Source: Tubulanus polymorphus
Taxonomy: Eukaryota > Animalia > Nemertea
Direction of reading: 5' to 3'
Length of the DNA: 64,000 nt
Assembly: GCF_964204645.1 (NCBI RefSeq)
Contig: NC_134035.1
Location: 13,576,686 to 13,640,685 of the forward strand
The position numbers were made by a program, and so were the translations under genes. Shown in pieces: positions 6,847 through 58,900 of the stretch. The number at the start of each line of letters is the position of its first letter. The stretch's first letter is position 1. The notes beneath the pieces are model-generated. The model worked only from the letters and a program-made list of their open reading frames with translations. It had not been told where the DNA came from and made no database searches.

Positions 6847-9800
6847 GTTGTCACTAGAGCTTATAGAATCTATCTGAAATGCCAAAACGCCTAAACACTA
6901 CTGATGAGGTAGTGATCATATCTCAATGATAGAATTACTGATATAAAATGGTTATATTTGAGAACTGAGGCTTTGGATCGGTTTAATAAAATGATTGTCT
7001 TTGTGTCCATCTGAAAACTTGTAACCACAGGCCCCGGGGGACCAAAAGTGGTCTTAAATCTTAAGACTGTTGGGGACCAAAAGTGGTCTTAAATCTTAAG
7101 ACTTGTCTTAAGATGTTAGATTGGCTACAGAACTAACTTTGTCTTAGTATGGTATTAAGTCTAAGCCCTGACTATGCAACCGGCCTCAGATGATAGATTG
7201 TGTAGTCTCTCGTCTGATATTGATTTAGATGATTTGATTATGATTTCAGAATTTCGCCGATCCGGGAGTGAGGAATAAAAAAGATGAAACACCGTTGGAT
7301 TTAGCCGCTCAATACGGACGTTTAGAAACGGTGGATTTATTGATTACACACTCGCGCCATCTATTGTCGAATTGTTCTATAACTCATACTCCGTTACATC
7401 TGGCTAGTCGAAACGGACATAAACAAGTAGTCGAGCGTTTATTATCGGCTGGGTTCGATGTCAATACTGCGGTAGGTTCTCCTATAATATTCCTCTTATT
7501 TCGTAGCAATAGTAAATAAAACTCTTGAGTGGGTTTCATAGATGTGGAAGAAAAATAATCCCTGGGAATATTTTGAAATTTGTCAGTTATAACCATGGTT
7601 TCTCATTGTAACTATGGTGGTTGTCACCCAGATTGAGGATTTAACCCTAGGGATAACTTTGATACTCAGTCTATGAAACCGGGCCCAGGAGTTTCGATGT
7701 AATGATTCCCCCTTGCCCCACGGTCTAGTTGGTTCATGTTATAAGCCCAAAAGCAGTGTTAAATCATTCAGAAGACTGTAGGTTTTCGGAATGAAATTTT
7801 TTGTAAAATACTTCTAAAGACTTGAAAACTTCTCACCATTGAGTGGACTGATACTGAGGAAACTCTTTACTCCCAAAAACTACATCAAAAAAATTTTATT
7901 CATCTTTAATTGAACTAAGATTTTGATGTCAAATTACTCTTGTTTTTGTGGAAAACATATAATTGTTTGTATTTTTAGACTGAATACGGTAGCGCGTTAC
8001 ATGTAATTGTTTGTATTTTTAGACTGATTACGGTAGCGCGTTACATGTAGTTGTTTGTATTTTTAGACTGAATACGGTAGCGCGTTACATGTAATTGTTT
8101 GTATTTTTAGACTGATTACGGTAGCGCGTTACATGTAGTTGTTTGTATTTTTAGACTGAATACGGTAGCGCGTTACACGAAGCAGCATTTTACGGTAAAA
8201 CTGACGTCGTAAAAGTTTTACTTTCGTTCGGCGTCGACACAAATTTACAAAATCAAGAAGGTAAAACAGCTCTGGAGCTCGTGAATTCACAGACATCTAC
8301 GAGATCACAGGAAATAGCACTTCTTATTAAACGTATGTACCACAACCAGCAATCCAGTTCGGGTGACCGCTAATCCAGTCCCCAGACCGGGTGACCGGTA
8401 ATCCAGTCCCCAGTCTGAACTACCAGGAATCCAGTCCTCAGTCTGGGTGACCGGTAATCCAGTCCCCAGTCCGGGTGACCGCTAATCCAGTCCCCAGACC
8501 GGGTGACCGCTAATCCAGTCCCCAGTCTGAGCTACCAGGAATCCAGTACCCAGACCGGGTGACCGGTAATCCAGTACCCAGACCGGGTGACCGGTAATCC
8601 AGTCCCCAGTCGGGGTGACCTGGAATCTTGTCCCCAGTCCGGGTGACCGTTAATCCTGCTGATTGTAAGTTTAAATCAATTGATATTTGTACACGTATTG
8701 TTGCAGGACAATCGTATCGCTATGGTGATGAGATCGTGATCACATCTGAACCGAGTAGTTATGATTTAATATCACAACAACAACAACAGCGGCGATCACT
8801 GGATAAATCTAATCAGGTATGGGTATCCACCAACAGGGGGTGTTAGTGAAACAGTCAACTTTTAGTTTTATGCATTAACCTCCTTCAGAAAGCTGAAAAC
8901 GAGCTTTGAAAACATAAAAGTTTTTTAAAATGCCGTTCAACTCCTTGAAAAAAGTCCTTGAATTCTGGAATGACTGATCTATTGGGACAATGAATGGTTT
9001 TAGGTGAAAATCCGAAAATTCAGATTTTGAAATAGTGTCTATTAACGTAGTATAACTATTGTGTGTATATTGATGTATTTGATGTTTATATTTCAGCAGC
9101 AGGATTCAGCGCAGGACCAGTCCTCTGTTACTACTATACCTCACAGTCAATCACTGTTTATATTTCAGCAGCAGGATTCAGCGCAGGACCAGTCCTCTGT
9201 TACTACTATACCTCACAGTCAATCACTGTATGAGAATGTATCCTCATCCAGTAGTAATAGTATAGTTAAACCGATACCACTTCCGAGACAGAGTAAACCA
9301 CCGGCTAGCGTACCCGTACCGGTGCCCGGAGTACCCGTACCCCGTCCGGGTAAACCAGCTCTACCCAGTCCTGTCTACGCTGCTGACTCCGATAACAGTA
9401 TCTACGCAATCGAACAAACTATTAAAAACTCAATGAACGCTAAAACTGAACGGTAAGATATTCACCCAGTTCTCTCTCCTAATGTCTATTTCAACCTGAG
9501 TTGAGAGCATTCCAGGTGGCCTAGCTCACTCAGTTTTGGTAGTACATACCTGATAAAGGTCTAAGTAGGACCAGAAAGGACTGGCAGCTGAACTAAAACA
9601 TTGAATATTAATCCATTCTACACTGTATTGAAGGTTTACAAAAAGTCTCTCAGAGAAAAGGTTTTTGAACCGGGCATTTCAAGTAGACATTATTAATTAG
9701 TGATGATTATTAATTGTATGTTCTGTTTATTTGATTGACAGGTGCAGTTCTAACAGCGGCGATGAATTATATCAGGTGCCTCCGTCTGCCCGTCGTTCAC

Positions 9801-12800
9801 ATGACAGCACGTCGTTTCAATTATATAAAGTTCCGCCTCCCGCGAATCGAGGGTCGGTTTCCTCGTCGGAGCGTCACTCGGAGTCGTACGACGTGCCTCC
9901 GACCGCTCGGTACTCCGCCGCTACGACCGTATCCTCCGGCGACGATACGTTATACCAGGTACCGCCCTCTAGTGGCGGAGTACGCACTTATTCGAACTGC
10001 TCCGATAACGGGTTGTATCAGATTCCGAGTCGGTCGCGTCAGACGTCGACCGCATCTTACGACTCCTGTAATCTATACCAGGTACCGCCATCTAGCGGCG
10101 GCCGCAAGAGAAATTCATCGGATGCGTCGAAAGCGCCACCTGTCGGCGACGACGGACTATATCAGGTACCGCCGTCGTCGTGCCGACGACCGTCGAGATG
10201 TTCGGAATCGGATGTTGGATTGTTGAACGAAGTTCCGCCGTCGCCGACCCAGAAAACGGACGGTTTATATCAGATGTCGTTCGACCAATCAGAGACGAGT
10301 TTACTGAGCGAGGTTCCTCCATCTCCGACGCAGACGAACGCTCCGAGCGGAGGATTCTATAAGAATATTCCTCCACCGCGGAAGAGTTCGATTCCACAAC
10401 GGAAACCGTCGTTAAACTCACAGAGTTCACTTTACGACGTTCCACCTGCAGGTGTTAATATTTACGACGTTCCTCCTGCTGGTGTCAATAATACTGTCGA
10501 TTGTAAGTTTGATTTCTATAAATCTGAGGGGAGGGGGCGTTTCAAAATTACCTCACCCCACATACACAATTTTAAACTAATCAACAAAATCTAACTCTAG
10601 ATGTTCATAAAGTATGTGCGCAGTATTTTGGTGATTTCTGGCCCCCTTTGCCCCCCCCCCCCCCCGTGTACTACTGTACAATTTGAAGTTTACTGGTGTC
10701 AATTGATTGATTAAAACTGTTTTATTTCAGCAGCAATGAAATCTGTAGGTTATATTCCGATGGACCAAGCAAAAGTTACCAGTAAACAAACGATGTCTTC
10801 CACTATGGTGAGTTTATTGAATGTAGTTTATTGGTGGAAAGGGAGAAGGGAGAGTGGTAGAGAGAGAGGGGAGAGAGAGGGGAGAGATGAGTGAGATTAG
10901 GAAGAGAGGGAGAGTGTGTTATATCGATATGACAAGTGAAAAGAGGGAATCCTTTACTGAACTCAATCTATGATCTAATCATTATTTTTCTGATATTCTT
11001 ATTTCAGGAAAAAAATTTTCATTATCAAAACATTCAAGAAAACCAGTATATTTTACATTCCCCTCCGAAGAGCAAACAATCGGCTACTGCTGCGCCTCCT
11101 AGTGGCGGCACCGGCGATAGTCAACGGAATCGAGGTGAATCGGAGGAGGAGAATCAATATATGATTCATTCTCCGAAATTGAACGAATCGAATTCTGTTG
11201 AGAAAACGGAAGAAATGTACATGAACAGCGAACAGTTAAAAACAGCTCGGAATAAATCAGAAAATTCAATGCGCAAAAACGATGAAACGATCGAGAAGGA
11301 TGAAACTGAAGAGGACGATAGTTATTTCATAAATACGGGCGTTAGTTTTACTCGTTCGTCGTCGACTGTGAAACCGATTGTTACGTCGTCGTTGCTAAGC
11401 GATAATGAACCGGTGCTTTATCAGAACCCTCACGAGGTTCGCAACGATTCGGACGGCGTTTATGAGTTGTTGTGTTTCGCAACGTCCGGGCAACGAGAGA
11501 CGGTTGAATCACACGATGTGAGTAGCGGTGAGGAGGAGGAGGTGCAGCTGGAGCAGCAGCAGCAGCAGCACCAGCAGCAGCAGCAGGAAGCTGTAAAAGA
11601 GAATAAAACAAAGGAGAACAAGAAAAAAGGTAAAAGGAAATGCAGATGATATAAGTGTATCTCTGTCCACAGCTGAATGAAATGTAGATCTTTAAAAGAT
11701 CTTTCAAACAATGTAAGATATGACTATTATTATTATCCTTTGAAAAAACAAGGGCTCCTATCTTTATAACAATAGCCAGTTCTAGAGCAAATCTGGACCT
11801 GTCATCTTGGTGCTTTTAGCAGAGTGGTCGCCTTGTAGTCTGCAGTTCTTATCCTGAATTTCTTTCTATGGAATATTTTTTTTCTTAAATCAAAATTATG
11901 ACCACCAGTACCGGTACACAGGATACATCGATAGGTGACAGAAAACCTGTTATCGCTGCTTTGCAGCTATATTGAATTTATTATTGATTTCAGAAGCTCC
12001 TCCGCCGGTCGCAGCTAAACCGATTTCTAAACCGCCGTCTTTAGAGTTTAATCAACAGCGCAGTAGCGTCGAGTTTCCCGGTGGCAGTCCGTCGAGTTAC
12101 ATCCAGCCTCCGACTCCAGATCATCCTCCACCGTCTCCTCAAACAGCTATATCCGGTATTATAGAAACTATCAATCTGAACGTAAGTTGAGATGATCAAC
12201 CATTGATGAGTTCGTCTTGTAAAGATAATATAAAATCCCTGCACACTAAGAATAAAAAGAGTCTGAAATGTTTCCTTGAGCTAGTGTAGTTTATTCAACG
12301 TTTCAACTATATCCTAATAGTCATCTTCAGGAATACTGATGTTGTCCTCATTATAACCATTGATGAAACACTCTGAGTCCGTGTTGTAAAGATAATATAA
12401 AATCCCTGCACACTAAGAATAAAAAGAGTCTGAAATGTTTCCTTGGGGTGTGTAGTTTATTCGATATTTCGACTATATCATAATAGTCATCTTCAGTAAC
12501 GCCAGTTTGTAGCACATCATATTGCTTAATCAGTCTTTTTTTCTGGACTGTATGAAATATCTCATAATTTTGTTATAACTTAAGTATTCCTGAAGATCAC
12601 AATTAGTGTATAGTCGAAACGTTGAAGTAAACTATTAGCCTCGGTGCGCAGGGATTTTGTAAATCGTAAAACCAATGAATTATAAAAACTGTGTTCGTTG
12701 ATTTATGGTTAGTATGTTTCGATGTAGATGTATTTATTACTATGGGTAAGTTGATAAAACACTTACAGTTTATCCTAGAATATAAACGCTTAAAACACGG

Positions 12801-15800
12801 ACACAATTTTCTCAAACAGGAAGACAGTATCTTTGCCTTGTGACCTCGAGATGTTAAATGGACAAAACGTGCGGTTGATGATTTAACTATTCATGTTCGG
12901 ATGGTTTGCAAAGTTTTCACTGAACTTCATCATCGAAGAAACAAAAATCAAACTGTTAGAATAAACAGTTAAATCATCAACTGTGGGTTTAGCTCATTAA
13001 CTGTGAAATACTTAAATCAATATGACAGTACACCAGTCACCATCAGTGATTTAACATGTTCGGGAGAGTGAGTCGATTCAAATCTTCAAGAAGAGACTTA
13101 AAGCACATATCTTTAATGAAACTTACAACTGAAATGTTTTAGCTCAAGAAAATATTGTATTTCAAACTATCTGTTTTGTTGAATATTTTTCTGTAAAGCG
13201 CTCTGAGTCATTATAAGATTAACCCTTTCAGTGCGTCTACACCGCAGTGCAGTGTACGTATCAGTGGTATGGATTTTGCTAGTACATCGCACTGCGGTGT
13301 ATTGATGTAATTAGTAATTAGTTTTTATCTCTACTGAAAGATGGCAGGACCTGTCAAACATAGTGAAATATTAGTAACTAACGATACACCGCGCCGCGGT
13401 GTAGACGCACTACAGTGGTACGTCCGTTATTCAACAAACTAGGGTGGAATTATTCAGAATTTTCAAATTATCTTCAGCACTATAGGATATTGATTAGTCA
13501 GCACTGAAAGGGTTAAACGCTTTATAAGAATAGATTTTATTATCATTATTATTTTATTATTTACGAATTATTCGATGTTTTTTTAGGAGAAGCGTCGATC
13601 ACGCGATCTGGAAACATCGTCTGCCGCCGATACGACGACGCCGGTTACTACGGAAACGATCGACGAGGGGCAGACGGCGGACGAATCGGAAACTGTGAAA
13701 TATTCGGATGAAAATCCGTTCATAGGTAAAATACATTATAGACTCTATTCCACAACATCGGTACTTACTAATATCATATCTATATTCTATATTCATGTTG
13801 AGGTTGTTCAGTGATACCAGGGTCTGGTTTTACTGACGCTAGCCCCGAGTCCAGCTGGGTCTGCTTAAACTGTAACCATGGCCCAGTTGCAGTGGTCTTA
13901 CATCTTAAAACTGAGGCCAGTTGCTCAAAAGTTAGTTAAAATAACCGGCGCATAAATTCCATAGTAAATGAAGTTTTAATTGTCACTATGTCAACTATCC
14001 ACTGGTTAACTCTAAACAACATTTGAGCAACTGGCCCAGGGGTTGGTTGCACAGTTGTGACTGAAGTCCAAAAGTTGTCTTAAACCTAAAGACTGGTCTT
14101 TAGTTACTAGATTGGCTATAGAACTAATATGTTCTTAGACTGGTCTAAAATCTAAGCCATGACTGACTGTGCAACTGGTGCTTGTTCCATAGTCATGGCT
14201 TAGATTTTAGACCAATTTAAGACCATGTTATTTCTATAAACAATCTAACAACTTAAGACCAGTCTTAGAATTTAAGACCATTTTTGGACTTAAGTCTCAA
14301 CTGAGGAACCAGCTGGGTCCTAAATCTGACTTAAACTAAACCAAACTCTGCTGATACATAGTAATATTAACAGTTAGGGTTTGAAGTTAAAACCGGGCTC
14401 AGTAATGAATGCATATCTTATATATAATCATCTAAAACTCTCTCTCTCTCTTTTTCTCTATTTTATTTCTTTATAAAATCTCATCGTAGAAGAATCTATC
14501 GATTGTAAGTGTTTAATAGTTCTGTGTATTCTAGATGGATAGCTTTCAGTGTTGTGTTTGTACCGGGATAGTTCATCCTTCAAACCGAGGGGTGGAGGGA
14601 TAGAACCTTCCCTCGTTTGTGTCCCTGCTCTGATTGACATCCTCATCCATTGTTTGAAAACAAAAAAACAGCCTTCGAGAATATATTTGATAAGAAACGC
14701 GTTGCATTGTGGAATAAAAATGCCTCAATCGACAATGAATCTTGTTTGATATTCGCGCAGTGCTTCTAAATCCAATCATCTGAGTTAAAATGTGACGAAA
14801 CAGTTGCGAAAATAAACTTATAATTGTTTCAGTGGGATTTGTATTTAATCTACAAACCGATGAAACTTGTTGATGTGAAGTTGAAGGATGTATGAAATTG
14901 AATGCATGCTCCGTGATGCCTTCCCCAGCCCCACTGTCTCCCATATTAGATTGAACAACAACATGCAGAAGCTACCAGCACTCTAAAGACTCTCAGCTAT
15001 TCGTCTCTTTCTAATACTCATCTCTTGTAGCCTGTTATTATTAACACTTTATTAATGCTTTTATTTATAGTTTTCAACTATTCTAGATTTTTCACCATTC
15101 TAGTCACGAGCCGCAGTAGTTCCTGTCAGGTTCAGGGGCCATTTGGACAGCGGAGACTAATCTCCAAAAGTGGTTTCAGATCTTCAAGACCGGTCTCAAG
15201 TTGTTAGATTAGTTATAGAACCAAAATGAGCTTAGAATGGTCTTAAGTTGTTAGATTGGTTATAGAAATGAGTTTAGACTGGTCTCAAGTTGTTAGATTG
15301 GATATAGAACCAAAATGAGCTTAGAATGGTCTTAAGTTGTTAGATTGGTTATAGAAATGAGTTTAGACTGGTCTTATGCCGTTAGATTGGATATGGAATT
15401 AATGAGCTTACACTGGTCTTACGTTGTTAGATTGGTTATAGAACCAAAATGAGCTTAGAATGGTCTTAAGTTGTTAGATTGGTTATAGAAATGAGTTTAG
15501 ACTGGTCTTATGCCGTTAGATTGGATATGGAATTAATGAGCTTAGACTGGTCTTACGTTGTTAGATCGGCTATAGAACAAAAATGAATTTAGACTGGTCA
15601 TAACTGTTGAAAAGGCTCCTGATCTATATTTCTCACTGTTTGTTTTACTAATAATCCTATTCACTTCTCTCCGTTCTCTCTATTACGTTTATTTTCATTA
15701 ATTTTTCGAAAATTATCACCTATAAAACCGATTGGGGTTTACGGATAGAGAATCAGTTTTAAGTGATGATTACTGTTGTTGTTTCTCCATCAACATTAAC

Positions 15801-18800
15801 TCTTTGTCCTGGATGAAGCGACTCAATACACTGATGTTTATTTCAACTGGACTTGAGAGTCCCACATCAGGTCCCTGCCTAGCTCAGTCAGTCTGGGTGG
15901 TACATACATGATAAAAGTCTTATTAGCACCACCTTTCAATGAAGACTTTTTGGATATCCTTCAATACAGTTTCAAATGGATTAAAAAATGATGATTTAGG
16001 TCGACTGCCTTTCCTTTCTGGTCCTATTAAGACTTTTATCAGGAATGTACTACCAAAACTAACTGACCTAGGCAGGTACCTGATGTGGGGCACTCAACAA
16101 GTCAGGTTGAAATAAACGTTAGTTGCGAAAGCTCTTAATTTCTAATAAAACTCATTAACCGGTTTATTTATTACGTGGCTCCTCTAAAACTAAAGGTGAT
16201 TATCTTTAATTTAAGGTTTATTGAAAGGATCGAAACCGAAGGGTCTAAAACGAGCTAAAACTATCTACGGAGGTGAACCGGCGACTAGCGCTGTTACTCC
16301 TAGAGTTAAACGTAATTCTACTCCCGGATTATTTTACGTGGCTTTCGATCCGCTACTAGAATCGCCCGGCGACGACGTATTCGTCTCCCCCGACGACGAC
16401 GGCGAGCAGACGCAACAATCGGCTGTCGTTAAATCGGTGCGAGATCGAGTTTCGGACATCGAGCGTAATTCACCGACCGGTTCACAGGGGGCGATGTCGC
16501 CGTTACGATCGCCGGTCTCGGAGAGCAGCGACGCCGACTCGGCCGTTGAAACACCGGTGAAACTACGGAAACAGAAATCGACCAATCAGCAACGAGATGA
16601 ATCCGACGAATGGAACGAGGTATAGTCAATTCAATTCAATTGATTTTATTCTAACAGTGATTCTCAGAGGTTTAATGATTTAAATCGATGTTTTAGATTT
16701 CAGATATATTTAATTTACTGCTCGGACATCGATTGAGTTCGATAAATGATTATCCTCTCTCCACTTCGATTATAGGTATTAAACACCCCCTCCCTCCACC
16801 CCCCACTCCCCTCCCTCCCTCCCTCCTCCCCCTCCTCCTCCCCTCCCCCCTCTCAAAATACTGTGAAATCTAGCATGAGCTTTAGGTTTAATGGTATAGA
16901 CAAACAGGAATGTTTTATCAAGATTTTGCTTAAAGAGAAAACAAGAAGTTTAACTCTCAGACAGATACCTCCCAGACAGAGATACCTCTCAGACAGATAA
17001 CTCTCAGACAGATACCTCTCAGACAAATATACCTCTCAGACAGAGATACCTCCCAGACAGAGATACCTCCCAGACAGAGATACCTCTCAGACAAATACCT
17101 CCCAGACAGAGATACCTCCCAGACAGAGATACCTCTCAGACAAATACCTCCCAGACAGAGATACCTCCCAGACAGAGATACCTCTCAGGCAAATACCTCC
17201 CAGACAGAGATACCTCCCGGACAGAGATACCTCCCGGACAGAGATACCTCCCGGACAGAGATACCTCCCAGACAGAGATACCTCCCAGACAGAGATACCT
17301 CTCAGACAGAGATACCTCTCAGACAGAGATACCTCTCAGACAATACTATGACAGGTGCCATTTAGACAGGTACTGCACTCATCTACCTCTCAGCCAAATA
17401 CGATTGAGACAAGTACCATTCAGGTACCATTCAGACAGATACCACTCAATAACCAGGTAGCTCCAAAGGTTTATTTATATCCAGTATTAGGTGTTACCTA
17501 GATTCAAACAAAGGATATTTTCATTTGGCTTCAGGACGCATGTATTTCTACAGAGTACAGATTTTGCTTTATTTGTATATAGAGAATCCCACATACTGAT
17601 TTAAGGAAAAGGTGAACCCCGCAGAGTTAAGTTCCATTAATCCAGTTATTTATTGATGCAACGTTTCGACTATAACCTGATAGTCATCTTCAGGAATACT
17701 ATTCGGTTATAGTCAAAATGTTGAATCAAAACTTTTCGGACTTCATCTTCTCGTTATATTAGTGTGGGATTCTGTATATATTGTCAGGACACAGACTCGT
17801 TTCATCAATGATTGTTTGCTGTATTTTATTCAAGATGTTTATTTATATACAATGTTTGTAGATTGCTGATATTATGGCTACGTTCGGAGGTCGAATTACG
17901 AATAGAGAATCAGTTTTTATGAACGATTTTGACAAAGAATTTGCTAAACTCATCTCAGGTAAGCAGCAGAAGCAGCAGCAGCCGCAGCAGCAGCAGCAGC
18001 CACAGCCGCAGCAGCTGCAACACACAGCGTCACATCCAGTTTATTGGGATCCACTTTCTCAACTGTGGATTTGAAATTTCACGGAGTTCAATGAATAGAT
18101 TTGAAGTCTAGAGATACAAACACAGTTCCACAGTTCCACTGAGTTTGATTCTAGGATATGAACTCTTAAAAAACTCTTGAATCAAACTTAAAACATCAAA
18201 TATGGAACTGTGGAATTGTGGAACTGTGTCATGGAGTATGGAACATAAGTTCAATAGTTAGGTGTTCAAATGTGGAACTGGATTGCACAGCAGTCGGATC
18301 CATAACTGTGGAACTGGTTCCCGGGGCTAATGGAACCACAAGACGTGTGTGGAATAGGATTCAGTGGAATTGCGTACAGAGTGTGGATCCAGTTCCACAG
18401 TTTTAGGTTAACCATTATTGAGAGTAATAAGAACAGTGTTCGCATTGAATCAGTTCATTCATTCACAGATGTATATAATATTTCTACCCGTTAGGAGCTG
18501 GTAAAGTAATAAGCGTCGGTGATTGGTTAGAATCGATGAAATTAGAACAATACGAAAATCTATTCATCGCCAACGGTTTCGATAATATGGATTTCATGGT
18601 AAGAGTTTTACATTTCTAAGAAACGAACGAACGAACGAACGAACGAACGATCACTTTCATTTTCATCGTGTAGATTTAAGCCTCTCGTATCCAAAATCAG
18701 ATAAATCTAGCTGATTCATACTATTTCAACGATTTCACATCAGCTTATCTTATTCATATCTTTTTATTCAAGCTTTTGGTTCTAGCCGCACTTTTATTAT

Positions 18801-36800: not shown

Positions 36801-39800
36801 CGTATTGTGGGTTTGGACAGTGTATTGTGGGTTTGGTTGTAAAATACTGTACAGTGATTCATGTCTCGTGTTCAGACTTGAGTTTATTGCTATAATCTGT
36901 TTATTATCAGTTTGTGATGAGACAAACTCTTAATTGAATTGCGGTTTGAAATTCAATTATCACCGCACAATGTTCATTTATATCCAAACGAAAGACAGCC
37001 CTCTGAGTAACGCCATCTAATAATAACTTACACGTTTTCTTGAGACGTTTCAGCTAGTTACAACAACTCAATTGAATAATGTTTCCTATGAAAACTAACA
37101 TTACTAAATAGAAAATCTTTAAGTATTTTGTTTCTATAACTTATGAGATTTTTTCTCACGAAAACAAATTAGATAGAGAAGATTTTTTTTAGAAAACTCA
37201 AACGTAGAATTCGAAACTAGTTGTGGCTCATTTTTGTTTTCATAGATTTTATAAGTTATAGAAACAAAATACTTAAAGATTTTCTATTTAGTAGCCTTAG
37301 TTTTCATAAGAAACATTATTCAATTGAGTTGTTGTAACCAGCTGAAACTCTTTGGGAGTCCTGAAGTCATGACTGCGAACTTGGATTCTGTTCTCTACGA
37401 CTTTGATTAAAAACGTAAAAACCATAAAATTGGATCCATGTTTTTTGGTCTCCTCCATGTTTTCCCAGACCCATATGAAACAATATTTCGAGCGTTTTTG
37501 CGAATTTGATGATGAAAAGGATTTAATCAAATCTACGATGAATTCTCTATTCACAATTTGCTCTAATCTAATCATCGTGTCTGATTATTTAATTTGCTGA
37601 AATTGATTCTCTCAGTATTTCAACGATAATCTCGCGAGAGAGTCTCGCTCCTCGTCGACGCCCGCTCGCGAGACTCTGATTGATAATAATACCGTCGCGC
37701 GATATTGAAATGATATTTTCGTCGCGTGTCGGATATAAATTTGATTTTAGACGAATTCGCTGATGAAATGTAGTTCGGGTCATCGGTTCACGCGGTACTC
37801 AGGTCATAAAACATAAAACCACAGGTCATTCAATAATCCACCACACAATCAATTATTCGACTATAAATTTATGTAATTTTCTTATGTGTCAATTATATTT
37901 TTACGTACAAGAATATCAGAACCAGCAGCAGTAGTAGCAGCAGCAGCAGCAGCACCAGCAGCACCAGCACCAGCACCAGCCGCAGCAGCAGTGTATAGAT
38001 CCTGTGTATATGTCTCAACTATTAGTAGACCCACCTCTCTTACTTGGCCTTACAGAACCCTGTCCTCAAGTCGGGGAATGTTGGAAAGATTCTTTTTGGA
38101 AAAACTTTCTCATTTCCCTGATTCTGAACTGGGTGAGATATTTACAGCAGTCTCAACACGCTATCGAGTTCCCTGATTCTCAACTCAGAGTCCACTGCAT
38201 CATGAAATTTAGATCAAATATTTCAGATCATCGCAGATAATCCTCGATCCTCCATTCACTGATCTTGTAATCATGAAAACAGATATTCTGCCAGAGTCTG
38301 AAACTTACTGCCACCTACGTTCAATCACGAGAACTAACGTTATCCGGCAGAAGTTTAATTTCTGTTAAATATGGACAAACAAAGCGTCAGCGAGCGCGGC
38401 CCGACCATCCATTAGAGCTACCCGCTACAACAATACATTAATGATCGTCAATAGCGACGATTGTTGAGGAATTCTCGGCCGTTTATTGATGTTTCGTAAA
38501 ATATTGTCGACGCTTCGGGGGCCGCTAACTCAACGCGATATTATAACATGCGTTATTACGAGCCGCCTCGTCAAAAACCGGTCGCGAAAAAAAACCTGAA
38601 TCACCGTTTTTATCATCGTCATGGTGCTAATTGTTGCATCGAGCAGGCGGGGGGCGAGTGAGGGGGCGAGGCTTTCGTATGAATTCTCCAACGTGATTTG
38701 TCGTCGGCGTCGTAGAAAGAGCTGCTCAAATAAGTGTGAAATGGATATAGACAGGAATGAATTCACTGCACTCTTCAACAACGAGACATCAACAAAACAT
38801 CGGAAATAAGGCTAGAAAAATCGATACCTTGTTTCTCTCATTTCTGCTGGGCTTCACTGTTGACCAGCCGGTCGTCGAGCCAGTATTCCTGAAGATGACT
38901 ATATAAGATATAGTCGATGCGTTGAATTAAATAGATTTATAGCTTAAAGGAAACTTTTCGGACTTCTGTTATCTCAGTGTGGGATTCTCAATATATCTTC
39001 ATAACACGGAATAGTGTTTCATCAATGTTAGCCTATCCACCTCATAGATAACTTTTTTTTAAATCATGATCTAGCCAACAATAACAGACCCGGCAGTTGT
39101 AGAAATGAACTGACTACAAATTCAATCGCAGTTTATAAAAGCGACCCAACCAATAGATCATCATTTACAAAATTATTACAAAATTCTCAAGTCATTCCTG
39201 ATTTCCCTGTTGAAACCATGATGACATAGGTGTATATAGAAACTGAGCGATAGAAACTAAAATAGAAAAAAGGAAATCCACGAGATCCAAGAATTTGATG
39301 ATTATTGAGAAACAAGGTATCGTTTTATTTCAGCCTGATCGCGGGAGGCTTGTATTGATACATGAGGTTTGTATAGATAGATAGCTGCGAGCTAAGTCGC
39401 GCGGACCTCTGTGAAATTCATCCTCGGACGACGCCGGAGAATGTCGTCGTCGTCGGTGGATTGTTGTGAAGTAACCGCGGTTACCGATGATACGCGTTAT
39501 AGTTGTTCAACCGATCGTATAGTTTTAAATACCCAGCTGCCTGCGTCCGAGGCCGAAGGGCCTCGACAAACCACCGATATTCTTCCGCCGTTTAAAGTTT
39601 TGTCGTCCGATTTGTGCAGTTAACTGTACATTTTGAACTTTTCCGCATCGAACGTCGAATAATAGAATATTTCACCGTTGATTAGAAGTGATAACGACCG
39701 GTTTCCATTTTTAAACGTACGACGTTCTTTTCGACGACTATTTCCGTCATTTCTCATTGTGTTTTAAATACAAAGCAGACGACAATTCTTCTTTAAGACA

Positions 39801-42800: not shown

Positions 42801-44941
42801 TAAACGTCCGTAAATTCACCACGACAACAACAATCTGATAAATGCAGTTATAACATCAGTATTCTGGAAGATGACTATTAGAATATAGTGGAAATATCAA
42901 AACATTCTGTAGTGATAACGAATTGATTTAGTTAAAGTCGATGATATGGTGTTATAACCATTGATGAAACATTCTGAGTCCGTGTTGTAAAAATGATATA
43001 AAATCCCTGCACATTGAAAATGAAAAATTCCAAAATGTTTCTTGGGCTAATAGTTTATCATTCGACGTTTCAACTTTATCCTAATAGTCATCTTCAGGAA
43101 TACTGATCGTCCTCGTTACAGCCATTGATGAAACACTCTGAGTCAGTGTTGTAAAGATAATATAAAATCCTACTCTAAACACGCATGAAACAATTAAAGG
43201 GGGGTATACTGATGACTATTAGGATAAAGTGTCCAGTGAATTCTAGTGCAAGGAAAACGTCAAATAACTAATTAGTCGAGGGAAACATTTCAGACTTTTT
43301 ATTCTCGTGCGGTATTTTATGTGACACCACGAATAAATGATTTACATTGTGTATATTTTACTATCCACTATTCGAGCACAGACTACGAGCGAAGTTGTGA
43401 TTCCTGTTTGGCGCCAGCACTTCCCATTATTCCGCAATCAAGACCTGCTCTCTTTCTCTTCTCTCTGTCTTTTTACTCATTGTTATCGTCAATGAAGTGA
43501 ATTGAATTGTGTAAAGATTGAGTGGTCGTATTTATTATTCTCTCGTCTGTTTTTCGTTTTTATTTCGTCGTTCTCGCGGTTTTTGATGATAAGTTGTCAT
43601 TTCACACGCAACGAGAATCTTTATCATCATCGACATAATATCCCTCCTCGCTAAGAATAAAAACAGTAACGAAATGTTTACTTGAGCTAGTGCAGTTTGT
43701 TTGATGTTTCAACTTTATCCTAATAGCAGGAATTCATGAGTTTAGTGTAGTTTATTCAACGTTTCAACTTTATTCTAATAGTCATCTTCTAGAATACTGA
43801 ATACCTTGAGCTAGTGTAGTTTATTGGACGTTTCGACTATATCCTAATAGTCATCTTCAGGAATACTGTATTCCTTGAGCTAGTGTAGTTTATTCAACGT
43901 TTCCACTATGTCCTAATAGTCATCTTCTAGAATACTGAATACCTTGAGCTAGTGTAGTTTATTGGACGTTTCGACTTTATTCTAATAGTCATCTTCTGGA
44001 ATAATGATGTAATTCCAGTCAAAGAATGAATAAATTCTGAAATGTTTCCTTGAGCTAGTGTAGTAATCTCAGTTTTGCCTATACCCTAATAGTCATCTTC
44101 AGGAATACTGATACTAGTCTGCAGATACACTCCATTAAGTTTCCTAAGTCTGAGTTAAGGACGCAAAAATAAGAAATTAATCGGGAGATTTGTTTTAGTC
44201 CAAAGTCCGAAATTAGGCAAGGTTTACTGTATAAACTATCAATCATATCTAGTTGGAAGAAGCCTGTTGAGTGTTGGGTGAAGCCTTGTGGAAATAGAGC
44301 CCAGAGGCCTTCATGTGAGAGGGTAGTGGGGGGTTAAGGAGGGTCGTCTGTTGGGCACGTGCTTCAATAACATCACTTAATACTATTAAATCTCAATAAA
44401 CCAAATATCTAAATAATCTAAGATATCGAATATCATTAGGAGCACGAGAGCCGCGAGTACTTGTAGTTATAGAGGTTTGAAGTGCTTTCCTAACTGGGAG
44501 ATGGAAGGGTATGTTATCTCTCCTGATACTCAGAGAGAGTTGGATAGTTATACCTGCAGGCTGTGAGGGGGATGAGAGGGAGGATGAGAGGGAGGAAGGC
44601 CACGGCGTATATTTGTCTTATGAAGGATGATTAACATTTCTATAACGGTTGAATAGATTTCTGACTTGTGTTGTTTAAAACGTTCGGTCGTTGTGTCGTT
44701 TCAGGATAGAGCAGCTGAAATCATACTGACTCTCGGCGAGGCCTTCGAAGTCGCGTATCAGATCGCTAAACTCGAGGAACAAGCTAACAATGCAGATACA
44801 TCACCACCAGCATCACCAGCACCACCAGCAGCAGCAGCTGTATCAATGGGACAACAAGATGAGATCAATCCATCAGTAATAACAACAACAATTAATACTA
44901 TTAGTGATACTAGTGATTCAAGCGCTGCCTTAATTGATTGA
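1196..44941 (+). CDS. ANKS1: ANKS1A/ANKS1B-family ankyrin-SAM-SAM-PTB adaptor gene, 5'-partial, 24 coding exons (whole span)
   Basis: Exons join in consistent phase through GT-AG introns. The translation shows ankyrin repeats ([44 protein letters not shown]), SAM1 ([14 protein letters not shown]), SAM2 ([11 protein letters not shown]) and a PTB domain (YLGS...GVKFID...FAYITKD...[14 protein letters not shown]), in the order known for ANKS1 proteins. Confidence 0.95.
1388..1790. repeat. Degenerate minisatellite (gatatcttgagattctgataatc)
   Basis: Visible tandem periodicity. Confidence 0.85.
2596..2721 (+). CDS. Candidate alternative first coding exon ([22 protein letters not shown]...ADCC)
   Basis: ATG + 42 codons ending at a phase-0 GTAAGT, compatible with exon 5911; CpG-rich surroundings. 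Confidence 0.45.
2928..4430. repeat. G-rich 59/65-bp minisatellite, about 24 copies
   Basis: gctgagttcagtgtttagggatgagagctggactgggggagggtatg(gttcag)n. Confidence 0.95.
5911..5985 (+). CDS. ANKS1: ANKS1 exon, ankyrin repeat ([25 protein letters not shown])
   Basis: T-rich tract + AG; GAG|GTAAG donor; phase 0/0; not in the ORF track. Confidence 0.93.
5988..6500. repeat. 82-bp minisatellite (~5 copies) starting inside the splice donor, then 18-bp repeats
   Basis: aagcattgtgggctacagg... at 5988, 6070 and onward. Confidence 0.9.
6779..6843. repeat. Intronic (CAG)n microsatellite
   Basis: About 21 triplets. Confidence 0.95.
7250..7471 (+). CDS. ANKS1: ANKS1 exon, ankyrin repeats ([24 protein letters not shown]...GFDVNTA)
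   Basis: tttcAG acceptor; GCG|GTAGGT donor; two ankyrin repeats. Confidence 0.93.
7527..7686. mobile_element. Short MITE, monomeric relative of the 19966-20860 array
   Basis: gggtttcataga...tctatgaaaccggg TIRs; reverse complement matches the last unit plus tail of the array. Confidence 0.7.
7960..8178 (+). repeat. 5 x 44-bp tandem duplication of a splice acceptor and exon start
   Basis: AG at 7977, 8021, 8065, 8109, 8153. Confidence 0.95.
8155..8332 (+). CDS. ANKS1: ANKS1 exon, last ankyrin repeat ([23 protein letters not shown]...IALLIK)
   Basis: Uses the last of five duplicated acceptors; C|GTATGT donor, phase 1. Confidence 0.9.
8350..8655. repeat. 28-bp minisatellite
   Basis: ccgggtgaccggtaatccagtccccagt units. 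Confidence 0.85.
8707..8816 (+). CDS. ANKS1: ANKS1 linker exon ([12 protein letters not shown]...KSNQ)
   Basis: ttgcAG acceptor, phase 1 matches previous exon; CAG|GTATGG donor. Confidence 0.8.
9097..9452 (+). CDS. ANKS1: ANKS1 linker exon, Pro-rich, YENV motif (alternative in-frame acceptor at 9169)
   Basis: tttcAG acceptor; CG|GTAAG donor, phase 2; open frame. Confidence 0.82.
9742..10502 (+). CDS. ANKS1: ANKS1 linker exon with nine YxxP motifs
   Basis: gacAG acceptor phase 2; T|GTAAGT donor phase 1; 761-nt open frame. Confidence 0.88.
10731..10807 (+). CDS. ANKS1: ANKS1 linker exon ([12 protein letters not shown]...STM)
   Basis: tttcAG acceptor (NAGNAG); ATG|GTGAGT donor; bridges phase 1 to 0. 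Confidence 0.82.
11008..11629 (+). CDS. ANKS1: ANKS1 linker exon (acidic, Tyr motifs, polyQ)
   Basis: tttcAG acceptor; G|GTAAAA donor phase 1; open frame. Confidence 0.85.
11994..12181 (+). CDS. ANKS1: ANKS1 linker exon ([12 protein letters not shown])
   Basis: tttcAG acceptor phase 1; AAC|GTAAGT donor. Confidence 0.87.
12197..12500 (-). mobile_element. ~166-bp head-to-tail repeat, each unit with a minimal type I hammerhead ribozyme (retrozyme/Penelope-like)
   Basis: Minus strand reads TATTC-CTGAAGA-T-GACTAT-loop-ATAGTY-GAAA-CG-TT/GAATA; two cores 166 nt apart. Confidence 0.75.
12292..12335 (-). ncRNA. Hammerhead ribozyme motif (type I, minimal)
   Basis: CUGAAGA and GAAA cores; helix I UAUUC/GAAUA; helix II GACUAU/AUAGUU; predicted cut after GUU between 12297 and 12296. 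Confidence 0.7.
12585..12660 (+). mobile_element. Inverted, degenerate copy of the hammerhead repeat
   Basis: TATTC-CTGAAGA...GAAACGTTGAA with mismatched helix II. Confidence 0.6.
13223..13512. mobile_element. piggyBac-like MITE
   Basis: TTAA-CCCTTTCAGTGC...GCACTGAAAGGG-TTAA (TIRs plus TTAA target duplication). Confidence 0.85.
13587..13725 (+). CDS. ANKS1: ANKS1 linker exon ([10 protein letters not shown]...DENPFI)
   Basis: ttttAG acceptor; G|GTAAAA donor; forms PFxGLLxGS with the next exon. Confidence 0.85.
13820..14400. mobile_element. Nested cluster of GGCC-ended MITEs (families also at ~7030-7190, 15170-15610, 31960-32430, 40697-40980, 45100-45226, 59250-59530)
   Basis: Recurrent ggccagttgc(t/a)ca...tg(a/t)gcaactggcc ends and ttaagaccagtct interiors. 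Confidence 0.65.
14490..14504 (+). CDS. Candidate 15-nt microexon
   Basis: Long pyrimidine tract, tAG, 15 nt, GTAAGT; phase 1/1, no stop. Confidence 0.5.
15831..16122. mobile_element. MITE with ~95-bp TIRs (family also at ~9479-9692 and ~47856-48282)
   Basis: atgtttatttcaac...gttgaaataaacgt long inverted ends; three similar copies in the window. Confidence 0.75.
16216..16619 (+). CDS. ANKS1: ANKS1 linker exon (GLLKGS...ESDEWNE)
   Basis: ttaAG acceptor phase 1; GAG|GTATAG donor; WxEI motif continues into next exon. Confidence 0.87.
16955..17342. repeat. 16-18-bp minisatellite
   Basis: cagacagagatacctcc/ct units. Confidence 0.9.
17576..17810. mobile_element. Inverted pair of hammerhead-repeat copies (intact core on minus strand, 17655-17698)
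   Basis: tatatagagaatcccaca / tgtgggattctgtatata inverted ends; minus strand CTGAAGA-T-GACTAT-CAGGTT-ATAGTC-GAAACGTT. Confidence 0.65.
17862..17958 (+). CDS. ANKS1: ANKS1 pre-SAM exon ([12 protein letters not shown]...LIS)
   Basis: tgtAG acceptor; G|GTAAGC donor. Confidence 0.87.
18495..18598 (+). CDS. ANKS1: ANKS1 SAM1 exon a ([29 protein letters not shown])
   Basis: SAM consensus; ttAG acceptor, ATG|GTAAGA donor. Confidence 0.93.
19047..19158 (+). CDS. ANKS1: ANKS1 SAM1 exon b ([25 protein letters not shown])
   Basis: SAM consensus; tgtAG acceptor, G|GTCAGT donor. Confidence 0.92.
19281..19324 (+). ncRNA. Second-family minimal hammerhead motif inside a ~33-bp inverted repeat (19230-19369)
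   Basis: CTGATGA-A-GCTTCTA-TACAT-TAGTAGT-GAAA-GC-TT; palindromic AGCT helix III. Confidence 0.55.
19387..19664. mobile_element. piggyBac-like MITE, second copy
   Basis: Same TIRs and interior as 13223-13512; right TSD mutated to GTAA. Confidence 0.8.
19730..19887 (+). CDS. ANKS1: ANKS1 SAM2 exon a ([17 protein letters not shown]...LWELELTT)
   Basis: SAM consensus; tgtAG acceptor, ACA|GTAAGA donor. Confidence 0.93.
19966..20860. repeat. 11 x 75-bp tandem array derived from one MITE end, plus the rest of the MITE
   Basis: Units start every 75 bp from 19967 to 20717; closes with the opposite TIR tctatgaaacccagtcc. Confidence 0.9.
21227..21340 (+). CDS. ANKS1: ANKS1 SAM2 exon b ([17 protein letters not shown])
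   Basis: SAM C-terminal helix LGHRKRIL; tgtAG acceptor, TTA|GTGAGT donor. Confidence 0.93.
21711..21740 (+). CDS. ANKS1: ANKS1 30-nt mini-exon ([10 protein letters not shown])
   Basis: ttttcAG acceptor, GAG|GTATTG donor, phase 0/0; skippable without frameshift. Confidence 0.6.
21832..21945. mobile_element. Harbinger-like MITE with CTG target duplication
   Basis: CTG-gggccagttttatagactggtattatctttaacc...ggttaaagataataccagtctataaaactgagcc-CTG. Confidence 0.75.
22615..22785 (+). CDS. ANKS1: ANKS1 SAM-PTB linker exon ([13 protein letters not shown]...DSTK)
   Basis: ttttcAG acceptor; AAG|GTTCGT donor; in-frame internal GTAAGT at 22657. Confidence 0.75.
23218..23376 (+). CDS. ANKS1: ANKS1 exon, start of PTB (RPP...[18 protein letters not shown])
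   Basis: WxHxPxxLI motif preceding the ANKS1 PTB; CAT|GTGAGT donor. Confidence 0.9.
23487..23558 (+). CDS. ANKS1: ANKS1 PTB exon ([24 protein letters not shown])
   Basis: PTB YLGS motif; tacAG acceptor, AAG|GTATGT donor. Confidence 0.93.
23675..23698 (+). CDS. Candidate 24-nt microexon in the PTB domain (LRYWERLK)
   Basis: tgtttgttttcaAG acceptor, AAG|GTTTGT donor, phase 0/0. Confidence 0.35.
24061..24352. repeat. 44-bp minisatellite
   Basis: gagttaactcttactcacaactgtagaactggatc units. Confidence 0.9.
24451..25105. repeat. 29-bp purine-rich minisatellite, about 22 copies
   Basis: ggggaggggatggtgatgatgatatagag. Confidence 0.95.
25743..25829 (+). CDS. ANKS1: ANKS1 PTB exon ([29 protein letters not shown])
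   Basis: PTB strand motif; ttccAG acceptor, AAG|GTAAGT donor. Confidence 0.93.
26069..26137 (-). mobile_element. tRNA-derived SINE-like head (A and B boxes), followed by TTAGGG-containing body towards ~25885
   Basis: Minus strand TGGTCTAGTGG (A box) and GGTTCAAATCC (B box); imperfect cloverleaf. Confidence 0.55.
29060..29285. repeat. 89-bp tandem repeat (~2.5 copies)
   Basis: aaatagagatgacttcagtaatgtgacgac recurs. Confidence 0.8.
30001..30680. repeat. C-rich 38/32-bp minisatellite
   Basis: ccgtaccctgaccagcccaaactcaacccaccctgtac. Confidence 0.95.
31096..31233 (+). CDS. ANKS1: ANKS1 PTB exon ([17 protein letters not shown]...FAYITKD...HYCHVF)
   Basis: PTB core; tttcAG acceptor, ACC|GTAAGT donor. 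Confidence 0.95.
32955..33270. repeat. ~105-bp tandem repeat, 3 copies
   Basis: ttttggtgtcttgttgttcttgctg recurs three times. Confidence 0.85.
34620..34990. repeat. 30-bp minisatellite
   Basis: taccctgaaatatcactctacaatttcaaa. Confidence 0.95.
36414..36836. repeat. 20-bp minisatellite
   Basis: gtttggacagcgtattgtga. Confidence 0.95.
37047..37348. mobile_element. Fold-back/MITE with >100-bp inverted arms
   Basis: tttcagctagttacaacaactcaattgaataatg... versus ...cattattcaattgagttgttgtaaccagctgaaa. Confidence 0.75.
38809..39336. mobile_element. MITE-like element with ~29-bp terminal inverted repeats, containing a hammerhead-repeat copy (38881-39030)
   Basis: aggctagaaaaatcgataccttgtttctc versus gagaaacaaggtatcgttttatttcagcct. 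Confidence 0.55.
40982..41500. repeat. 40-bp minisatellite
   Basis: tctgggctctgggtccctgtgtcatgggttccagtgtcc. Confidence 0.95.
41855..41990. repeat. 20-bp minisatellite
   Basis: gtggcctcacattttgagat. Confidence 0.9.
42855..43320. mobile_element. Cluster of hammerhead-repeat copies (best core on minus strand, 43059-43102)
   Basis: ~164-bp period (ccattgatgaaac at 42958 and 43122); GUC cleavage triplet; degenerate inverted copies on both sides. Confidence 0.65.
43650..44110 (-). repeat. 69-bp tandem array of hammerhead cores (about 6 units)
   Basis: ccttgagctagtgtag at 43804, 43873, 43942; each unit spans the ribozyme fold. Confidence 0.75.
44705..44941 (+). CDS. ANKS1: ANKS1 terminal coding exon ([19 protein letters not shown]...ALID stop)
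   Basis: PTB C-terminal helix; tttcAG acceptor; TGA at 44939-41. Confidence 0.93.
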   Translation, partial: DRAAEIILTLGEAFEVAYQIAKLEEQANNADTSPPASPAPPAAAAVSMGQQDEINPSVITTTINTISDTSDSSAALID

Positions 44942-55900: not shown

Positions 55901-58900
55901 CGCGCTGTCCACAGTGCCTGCGTGTCGGCCCTGTGCCAGTGCCGGCCCAGTGCCGGGCCCTGGCCCAGTGCCAGTCCAGTGCCTGCCCAGTGCCGGCCCA
56001 GTGCCGGTTCAGTGCCTGCTCAGTGATTTTCAGTGATAGATTTCTATTTGTTGATATAAAGTCTCGACGCGTCTATTGCAGATTCTTCAATTAGTCTCGG
56101 CAAAAATGATGACTTAATTTGATGAAAAATTCTGATTGAAGATTTTCATCTCAAATCTGACATATATTGAGACGAGATGGGTGAGAGGAGACGGGGATGA
56201 GAGGGGGGAGACGGGGATGAGAGGAGAGGGAGGAGGGTGTCTCCTGTCTCTCAATTCTCTCATCAATAAATCTCACTATCTCAGTGTTGAGAGTCTGTTA
56301 TGTGCTTCAATACAGATATCATAATAAACTCATATAATTCGGAATCAGATTTCGAAATATTGAACGGCGGTTGATTTAATGAAATCAATCTGACGCGGCG
56401 GAGGGGACGGAGGGGACGGCGGAGACGGAGGGGAGGCTCGAATGAATTTCCGAGGATTGACACTGATTGTGACCCCCACGTATTCCGGCAAACTCACCGC
56501 GTGTCCGATATATTGTTTTATAATCGGTGACGATTGTAAATTTCTCTGCTGATCGAACTCGCACAAAATCTCCCCATTAAAGCGGAATGATCATCGAGGT
56601 GCATGCGCGAGTGCACTTTAGGTGTCGGGTGGATTGCGGGGAGGGGTACACTGCGAGAGCGGGGTCCGAGTGGTGTGTCACCCCAGGTCACAGTTACCAA
56701 ACACAGAATATCGCCCTGTAATGACTAAGTTGCTTGAACACAGAAATAGAGAAGGATTTTCTTCAGTTATATTCTTTATAAAAAATATTGATTCATTTTT
56801 AATCATAGATTTATCGACTGTGGTATATACATATGTAGAATGATATTATCGATCGGCTCAAGGCGTGAAGGGACCATAGCAACACGCTTCAACAATCAAT
56901 ATATAGCCCGAGGACTGTCCTCTCTTTCTATACAAGGAGAAAGTGTGGATGAAACTTGTATTTGAAACGTTTGGCCAATTATTTTTTTATCTGCGATCTA
57001 AATGCGCACAGTATGTCGTCCGTTCCCGCGGGGTCCACAGAGCGCCTCGGGTCGCGCTGGTCATGTGGTGTATAGTGTTGTGTGTGATAGACCTTTTTAC
57101 GATATCATCAGTCGCGCACCACGTGATAACAACATGTAAAATATCTGATGACAAACACTATAGATACAAGGGGTTCAAACATTCCGAGTCCGTGTTGTAA
57201 AACCCATTGTAAATAAATTCCACAATAAGAATAAAAAGAGTTCCAATAATGTTTTCTTTAGTTAAATGTTTTATTAGACGTTTAGATATCATAAATAACC
57301 AACTTCTGCAGGAATATCAAAGTTATAGACAACAAAATGAGTTTTAAGTTCGATTTGACTTGATTTGAAACATTGAAAATGGAGTAACTTTAACCGTCAA
57401 CTGTCTGGGACTGGGTTTTACAACAGTGGAACTATCCGTAAGCCCCGAGTCAAATCACAAAAAGTCTCTTTTTATCATGAATTTATCTTATATATTTCTT
57501 ATCCTTGATTGACCACGTTTGATGATGCAATCCAGATCCATTCATCAGTTTGAGTTTTGTTTATTTCGTGTAGATCGAGATTTCACGATTTGTAGAAATC
57601 TCAGAGAGGAGATCCGACAGGGTTTGAATGAACGATACCTGTTTCTATGTGCAGCGAGTCTTACGGGACGAGAAAAATATGTTTAATACATAATTACAGA
57701 TAACACGAGCCCGCGGTGAGAATCATTGCAACCTCGAGCAATAATTTAACATCTGTTAACAACACCCTTCGAATTATACCAAACTCGGGATAGTGAAATT
57801 GATATAATCTCTTGGGTGTTGAAAATAAACCACCACCACCAACAGTCAGCGCCCCGGGCTCGAATCCAAAACATCCCAATAAATTACATAAGTTGTCCGT
57901 AGTCCCGCCTATATAGTTAAACTCAACGGGCCGCGGTAAATAGCAACTGGCTACATGGTAACCGGGTCGGGTTAGGGCACACGCTGTGGGTACCTTACTC
58001 AGCCTGAAACCCAGCAGGGGTTGCGTTCACGTAATGAAGACTCGACATTTGTTAAACTATTGTCCTCTTAATGTGATTTGTGTTTATTCGAATCGGCTTG
58101 AAATTGATAATTACAACTTAGGTTGTAATTCGATCTAATGAAGGCTGAGAGACTCGCTGTCCATAGTCCACAACACGTTTAATGAGGGAGAGGGACTAGC
58201 TGTCCATAGTCCACACAACCCGTCGCCAATTTGTTCTATCTAATGAGGGAACTGATGACGGCCAACTGTCCACACCTTGGTTCATAGTTTTCGAGAAAGT
58301 TTTGCTTGTTTCAGCAAAATTGTTTGTGAAGATTTTATCTATTTATGTAGGACCATGTAAATAACGAATACAGTAGAAATGTGCCTGACTTGAGCGACGT
58401 CTACGAGTTGGATGCTTTATAATTCTTAAGTACTGTCCTGAAAATACTTCAACGAACATCTGAGTTAAACGGTTAAATCAGACTTGGTCGGATCCGATTT
58501 ATCCTATCGTCTGCTTATTTATATTTCCTGTGGTTCTGTGCTGTCCGGGGAAGTCAATCAGAATACTTAATGATGATTTGTGTCCTGAAATTAATCTTCT
58601 AATTCCTCATGTTGTGATGAAACAGTTGACGCCCATCTCAATTATATCATTTCATGGCAGTCCCATAGAAAAATACATTATAAACTATTGGAAAAGTGTC
58701 TATTGAACTTAGTATATCAACTATTTCGATGTTTTCGTTTAAAGGTGTTGTAGCTTTATTAATTCGTCCCGTTTTCTCTATCCGCTAATTGCAACTAATT
58801 TGTAGCAATAAATCAAAATTGAATTGAATTGGTCCCCGGTTTCTTTCTCATTTGCATTATTTGAATATGGTCAATGCATACATATCTTTTAAACAATCCA

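Follow-up and report, generated by a model that had tools for sequence, protein, structure and literature searches.

A 167-nt hammerhead repeat in Tubulanus polymorphus, probably a non-autonomous derivative of a Penelope-like element

A hammerhead ribozyme motif lies within a short, rearranged repeat at positions 12192-12716 of the stretch of Tubulanus polymorphus DNA analysed here (64,000 nucleotides of contig NC_134035.1, hereafter the window). What kind of element is this repeat, how did it reach its present site, and could it release a small circular RNA, as the original prediction proposed? We consider it probable that the locus represents head-to-head, 5'-truncated insertions of a non-autonomous 167-nt family, derived from the pseudo-LTR (pLTR) of a Penelope-like element (PLE) and spread in trans by the PLE enzyme. 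This reading is built on a motif, a repeat family, a homology to a PLE, a set of common end positions and an inverted-pair architecture, all of which were observed directly.

On the minus strand, the window sequence from 12335 to 12292 reads UAUUC-CUGAAGA-U-GACUAU-UAGGAU-AUAGUU-GAAA-CGUU/GAAUA, with the predicted cut between 12297 and 12296. Both catalytic boxes (CUGAAGA and GAAA) are present together with a UH cleavage site. Five base pairs form helix I (UAUUC/GAAUA) and six form helix II (GACUAU/AUAGUY, with a G-U closing pair at this locus), a single U is unpaired after A9, and the palindrome ACGU stands in place of helix III. Boxes, helices and palindrome were thus confirmed where they had been predicted, and the genomic consensus of the hammerhead core is the same as the window sequence (CUGAAGA ... 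GAAA). By its core boxes, helices and palindrome this is a minimal type I hammerhead of the PLE type, for which catalysis is predicted, and its structure also supports the earlier assignment to the minimal, dimer-dependent class known from Penelope elements. The palindrome extends to the 6-mer AACGUU, both in the window (12297-12302, minus strand) and in the family consensus. A predicted dimer would therefore also pair A14 with U17 and compete with the active core.

A structural descriptor (core boxes, at least 4 bp in helix II, at least 4 bp in helix I and a U-H cut site) found two matches in the 64-kb window, at 12292-12335 and 43059-43102 on the minus strand, and none in 20 shuffles. A sequence pattern matched three times in the window against 0.04 expected; across the 268-Mb assembly, which was the genome searched, it matched 1466 times against 0 for the reversed control. 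Together, the shuffle, expectation and reversed-control counts exclude a chance origin of the motif. The Rfam hammerhead models, including Hammerhead_1 (RF00163), gave no match at the gathering threshold or at E <= 10. This is expected, since the type I model needs a helix III hairpin that is missing in the PLE-type minimal class, and the null result says little on hammerhead identity.

The original prediction described two head-to-tail units at the locus, followed by an inverted copy (Table 1). The two cut sites, 12297/12296 and 12463/12462, are indeed present and lie 166 nt apart, but the second hammerhead is truncated at its 5' end. It reads CUGAAGA...GAAAUAUC/GAAUA from 12499 to 12458, with AUAU at helix III and C at position 17. 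In BLAST with the unit, family homology of the second unit begins at the CUGAAGA box (12499); the 5' strand of helix I is therefore flanking sequence and pairs poorly. Judged by its sequence, the second hammerhead is a 5' truncation point, and no complete second ribozyme is predicted. The inverted copy was found on the plus strand, beginning at 12577, and is decayed. It carries CTGAAGA at 12590-12596 and GAAACGTT at 12616-12623, its helix II is broken by two mismatches, and it may reach ~12716, with weak homology past 12660 (13 of 500 shuffles score equally high). Around 12192-12716 there is no target-site duplication of more than 5 nt. The partial unit at the opposite end of the locus stops where, by homology, the PLE has its distal 3' terminus.

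With only one intact hammerhead, the locus is unlikely to free a 166-nt monomer by itself, and the ACGU and AUAU palindromes of its two hammerheads cannot pair mutually in a dimer. The AUAU sequence had been put forward as a palindrome kept in the second unit, a claim that the genome-wide counts contradict. Among 1681 motifs with otherwise intact helix II, 1551 have ACGU, 68 have AUGU, 54 have ACAU and 8 have AUAU. We considered compensatory covariation for AUAU and rejected it, given 8 copies where independent CpG decay would predict ~2, and 122 variants that are a single step away. On these sequence counts, AUAU is best explained as a rare product of double CpG decay and not as a maintained covariant.

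Table 1. Positions of the hammerhead-bearing repeats in the window and of the related Penelope-like elements in the genome.
Feature	Position	Strand	Details
3'-terminal partial unit	12192..12296	-	unit positions 1 to ~108-114; 10-nt internal deletion
Sole structurally intact minimal type I hammerhead of the locus	12292..12335	-	cut 12297/12296
Complete 166-nt unit	12297..12462	-	98% identical to the commonest 167-nt genomic units
5'-truncated second hammerhead	12463..12499	-	starts at CUGAAGA; predicted cut 12463/12462
AT-rich spacer between the head-to-head arms	12500..12576	.	77 nt, 69% AT, no unit homology
Inverted decayed partial copy	12577..12716	+	hammerhead-like part 12584-12628, then internal deletion
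Solo hammerhead copy	17653..17700	-	core intact, helix I 3' strand mutated
Older single copy	38881..39027	+	GAAA changed to GAUG; ends at unit position 106
Cluster of older copies	42852..43320	both strands	3' ends at unit positions 113 and 67
Decayed array of the 69-nt short form	43635..44113	-	ends at unit position 67
Diverged fragment	57177..57258	-	75% identity, unit positions 19-98
PLE family 1 reference locus	L034:5800-8871 (G000:C2:13167800-13170870)		further loci L035-L064
PLE families 2 and 3	G000:C3:23045761-23048142, C5:7313573-7315954, C5:7318183-7320564, C1:15223827-15226208, C1:13430498-13432885		

The locus adjoins a large exon of a host gene, whose 3' boundary is at 12181, next to a GTAAGT splice donor (window 12171-12190). 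The 3' end of the repeat lies 11-16 nt inside the host intron. Because the array is antisense to the gene, the intact hammerhead would be outside the host pre-mRNA; the inverted copy is in the sense orientation, but is decayed. Summed contig depth in the DNA runs reaches hundreds to thousands of times the single-copy value at 9453-9603, 11869-12019 and 13077-13500, which marks other high-copy repeats beside and inside the host gene region. The window is also rich in minisatellites, with 96 tandem-repeat rows; among them are 65-bp (2928-4427) and 75-bp (19969-20789) arrays.

BLAST with the unit recovered related copies at all of the other window sites for which they had been predicted. The second intact hammerhead of the window belongs to the cluster at 42852-43320, and several cores in the array at 43635-44113 are mutated (CUAG, CCAG). 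In the genome as a whole, the commonest form of the unit is 167 nt long and is found in tandem arrays of 3-11 units with 93-100% identity. Family units occur at many loci with differing flanks, most of them no more than a few Mb from a contig end and a small number in the interior, like the copy at 12192-12716. Two unit-specific patterns gave family sizes of about 180 and 206 copies, and the hammerhead motif is far commoner than the unit, with at least 1466-1551 exact pattern matches. The unit is non-coding (GC 34%; no stop-free stretch of a trimer exceeds 46 codons), and an RT/GIY-YIG ORF was sought in it and is absent, so the unit is not an autonomous PLE.

A 69-nt form with the same hammerhead is interleaved with the 167-nt form within the same arrays. 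It consists of positions 1-25 of the 167-nt unit, 2 nt, and positions 126-167, with positions 26-125 missing. The segment from +26 to +112, which includes both PLE terminus positions, is thus kept in the 167-nt form and missing from the 69-nt form. At L018 and L020 (G000:C8:194587-238097), three 167-nt units followed by one 69-nt unit make up a higher-order pattern, and the corresponding 236-nt (167+69) spacing recurs at further loci.

Near dispersed pairs of hammerheads lies a 2857-nt element whose 802-aa ORF matches both RVT_1 and GIY-YIG, which identifies it as a Penelope-like element. With this ORF found directly, the proposed link between the non-coding tandem family and PLEs is borne out. 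The same hammerhead stands ~100-105 nt upstream of the ORF (ATG) and again downstream of it, and an inverted partial copy lies upstream. PLE family 1 has at least 13 full-length copies with intact 833-aa RT/GIY-YIG frames that share 99-100% amino-acid identity, as well as many more copies that are 5'-truncated, and it looks active in this genome. Two further PLE families have 68% and 59% amino-acid identity to family 1, and several of their copies have intact 817-aa frames. Among the matches listed for a 34-nt unit-specific pattern, none lies beside copies of families 2 and 3; 106 further matches exist. ORFs at L031:3567-4325 and L032:804-1853 adjoin PLE copies and match DNA_pol_B_2 (type B DNA polymerase), with weak aspartyl-protease matches; these sites probably harbour other, nested mobile elements.

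Counted from the cut site, the 167-nt unit aligns to positions -46 to ~+110 of PLE family 1. Matching positions number 42/43 (98%) for the hammerhead and 5/5 for the helix I 3' strand; identity is 68% over +6 to +55 and 63% over +56 to +107, and there is nothing recognisable beyond. The original prediction depended on a core that is conserved more than its flanks, and the hammerhead is in fact far better kept than its surroundings. The 166/167-nt period joins ~+112 straight back to the hammerhead, a junction that is missing from the 2857-nt PLE.

Family and PLE also have insertion ends in common. The 3' ends of 23 PLE copies fall into two clusters 37 nt apart, at +64 to +68 (13 copies) and +101 to +107 (10 copies) after the hammerhead cut. 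By homology, these clusters correspond to unit positions of ~67-73 and ~106-113. A clear 3' end is present in ~16 arrays or solo copies, and it lies at unit positions 101-113 in 8 of them and at 67-73 in 4. Arrays that end off the PLE positions do so at unit 50, 84, 90 and 98 (four arrays) or inside the hammerhead region (another four). The window array ends at unit ~108-114 (window 12192-12197). At the 5' side, array ends are variable, and an inverted partial copy is present there in 4 of 14 arrays. A PLE 'tail' of 30-40 nt has been traced to two internal start sites of reverse transcription (Frangieh et al. 2024, PMC11167929), and Craig et al. (2021, PMC8557442) report the tail alongside 5' truncation and an inverted partner at the 5' end. 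The head-to-head pair at 12192-12716 fits the published nicking and extension of both DNA strands by the PLE protein.

These observations suggest how the family could have arisen and spread. The unit would derive from the PLE pseudo-LTR by retention of the hammerhead and ~110 nt after it and loss of the RT/GIY-YIG gene. The place where PLE copies end would be the presumed internal start site of reverse transcription, a position that for this PLE we infer from genomic ends. From the same ends, it appears that the PLE protein could act in trans to copy array transcripts into new sites by target-primed reverse transcription. Since the unit keeps exactly the part of the PLE that runs from the hammerhead to its two 3'-end positions, and most copies end at one of these two, trans-mobilisation by the PLE enzyme is the process to which the data point.

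We are less confident about the part played by the ribozyme. The hammerheads may dimerise through ACGU and cut multimeric RNA after GUU, giving monomers of 167 nt that a tRNA ligase could close into circles. This proposal is an analogy with double-hammerhead cleavage and circle ligation in other systems (PMC4209133, PMC7229834), in which terms a double hammerhead formed by ACGU pairing would cut multimers and the monomers could be ligated into circles. Published PLE hammerheads cut poorly in vitro, and cleavage was dispensable for insertion in vitro (PMC4209133, PMC11167929). The circular fold of the 167-nt monomer (-23.5 kcal/mol) has no excess structure relative to shuffles (z = 0.24), and the active hammerhead fold differs from the predicted minimum-energy fold of the monomer. 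A predicted dimer cofold pairs the AACGUU palindromes, a modelling result that is weakly informative. Four of the sequencing runs are contig sets that look like DNA, and a fifth, possibly of RNA, has zero coverage of the stretch; circle-junction reads would be ambiguous in any case, because tandem genomic copies mimic the same junction.

Position 11.1 of the hammerhead also bears on ribozyme function. In 53 units from 167-nt arrays it is C in 24, G in 25 and T in 4, so that ~47% of array units have a G-G mismatch that breaks the conserved G10.1-C11.1 pair. C is found at this position in all 20 distinct PLE-linked hammerheads, and the window copy at 12292-12335 has U, which accounts for its G-U pair. 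Units with C and with G at 11.1 are mixed within arrays (L002-L030; G000:C8:0.19-3.7 Mb). Given G at 11.1 in about half of the array units, catalytic constraint looks relaxed in the arrays.

The concentration of units at contig ends and the higher-order patterns with the 69-nt form also fit satellite-type local amplification, and the alternative that survives best is a plain satellite. On this explanation, a single capture of a PLE tail fragment was followed by spread through unequal crossing-over and subtelomeric segmental duplication, with no ongoing retrotransposition and no ribozyme function, and the window copy is an old stray fragment. The strong enrichment of arrays near contig ends, the mixing of 167-nt and 69-nt units in higher-order patterns, the G11.1 mismatch in half of the units and the absence of transcripts from the runs described above are all in its favour, and a 2026 preprint (10.64898/2026.07.22.740005) also proposes local amplification following PLE insertion. 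However, isolated interior copies have differing flanks, variable 5' truncation and inverted partners, and their 3' ends fall at the two terminus positions of the PLE. Recombination alone predicts none of these features, and we therefore regard the satellite explanation as unlikely.

It is more improbable still, and by a wide measure, that the locus is the rearranged, 5'-truncated remnant of an autonomous PLE, with a partial tandem and an inverted copy but no separate family. In its favour, the architecture is that expected of a typical PLE insertion (PMC8557442), and the hammerhead shares 98% identity with its PLE counterpart. However, outside the hammerhead the repeat has 63-68% identity to PLE family 1, yet 98% to ~200 genomic 167-nt units, and the PLE lacks the junction between ~+112 and the hammerhead. 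Finally, there is hardly any prospect that the motif merely resembles a hammerhead by chance and has no RNA role: the Rfam models do not match and the active fold is not the predicted minimum of the monomer, but shuffled and reversed controls gave 0 matches against 1466 in the genome, the core is 98% conserved while the flanks have diverged to ~65%, and the motif has the specific traits of published PLE hammerheads.

Returning to a 167-nt family mobilised in trans, the unit reaches from the hammerhead to the distal 3'-end position of the PLE and includes both end positions. We raise the speculative and rather doubtful idea that it is a natural minimal cis module for PLE mobilisation, which would be cut, ligated into a 167-nt circle and reverse-transcribed by a rolling-circle process into arrays. 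If true, the unit would be among the smallest retrozymes and the first based on a minimal PLE-type hammerhead, and it would offer a direct handle on the RNA recognised by the PLE reverse transcriptase.

The minimal type I hammerheads of PLE pLTRs (Cervera & de la Pena 2014, PMC4209133) resemble the motif described here in their core boxes, 5-bp helix I, 6-bp helix II, unpaired nucleotide after A9 and palindromic 15.2-16.2 without a helix III hairpin. They are likewise located in PLE pLTRs and frequently occur as opposite-strand pairs 50-700 bp apart. In contrast to those hammerheads, the present motif is also found in a 167-nt tandem unit without an ORF, and half of the units break the G10.1-C11.1 pair of the consensus. 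The insertion signature is also that of PLEs (PMC11167929, PMC8557442), with two 3'-end positions, 5' truncation and an inverted partner. In the anole element (PMC11167929), the hammerhead overlaps the start codon and reverse transcription starts inside the ORF, whereas in the PLE described here the ATG follows the hammerhead by ~105 nt and is also where the distal terminus falls.

The original prediction called the family possibly undescribed, but elements of this kind have been described in 2014 (PMC4209133), 2020 (PMC7229834) and 2026 (10.64898/2026.07.22.740005). Non-autonomous, retrozyme-like PLE derivatives are thus already known, and the current picture of hammerheads and PLEs is unchanged by the 167-nt family. 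The family shares with non-LTR retrozymes (PMC7229834; 10.64898/2026.07.22.740005) its short, AT-rich and non-coding units in tandem, a type I hammerhead in each unit, arrays of few units, enrichment at chromosome ends, homology to PLE pLTRs and the presence of autonomous PLEs in the same genome. The 167-nt unit is within the reported ranges of length, which are ~170-400 nt for retrozyme units (Cervera & de la Pena 2020, PMC7229834) and 51-972 bp for the retrozyme consensus sequences to which an origin from PLE pLTRs is ascribed (Li, Clavereau & Pollet 2026 preprint, 10.64898/2026.07.22.740005). The invertebrate retrozymes reported in 2020 have canonical hammerheads with loop-loop contacts and give rise to abundant, highly self-paired circular RNAs, whereas the 167-nt unit has a minimal PLE-type motif and no excess predicted structure. 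On its sequence features, the 167-nt repeat is best filed beside the animal non-LTR retrozymes. It has recently been proposed that the retrozyme-like repeats of animals branched off from PLEs as non-autonomous derivatives, and the family contributes a further example of invertebrate style, with its anatomy resolved to single bases.
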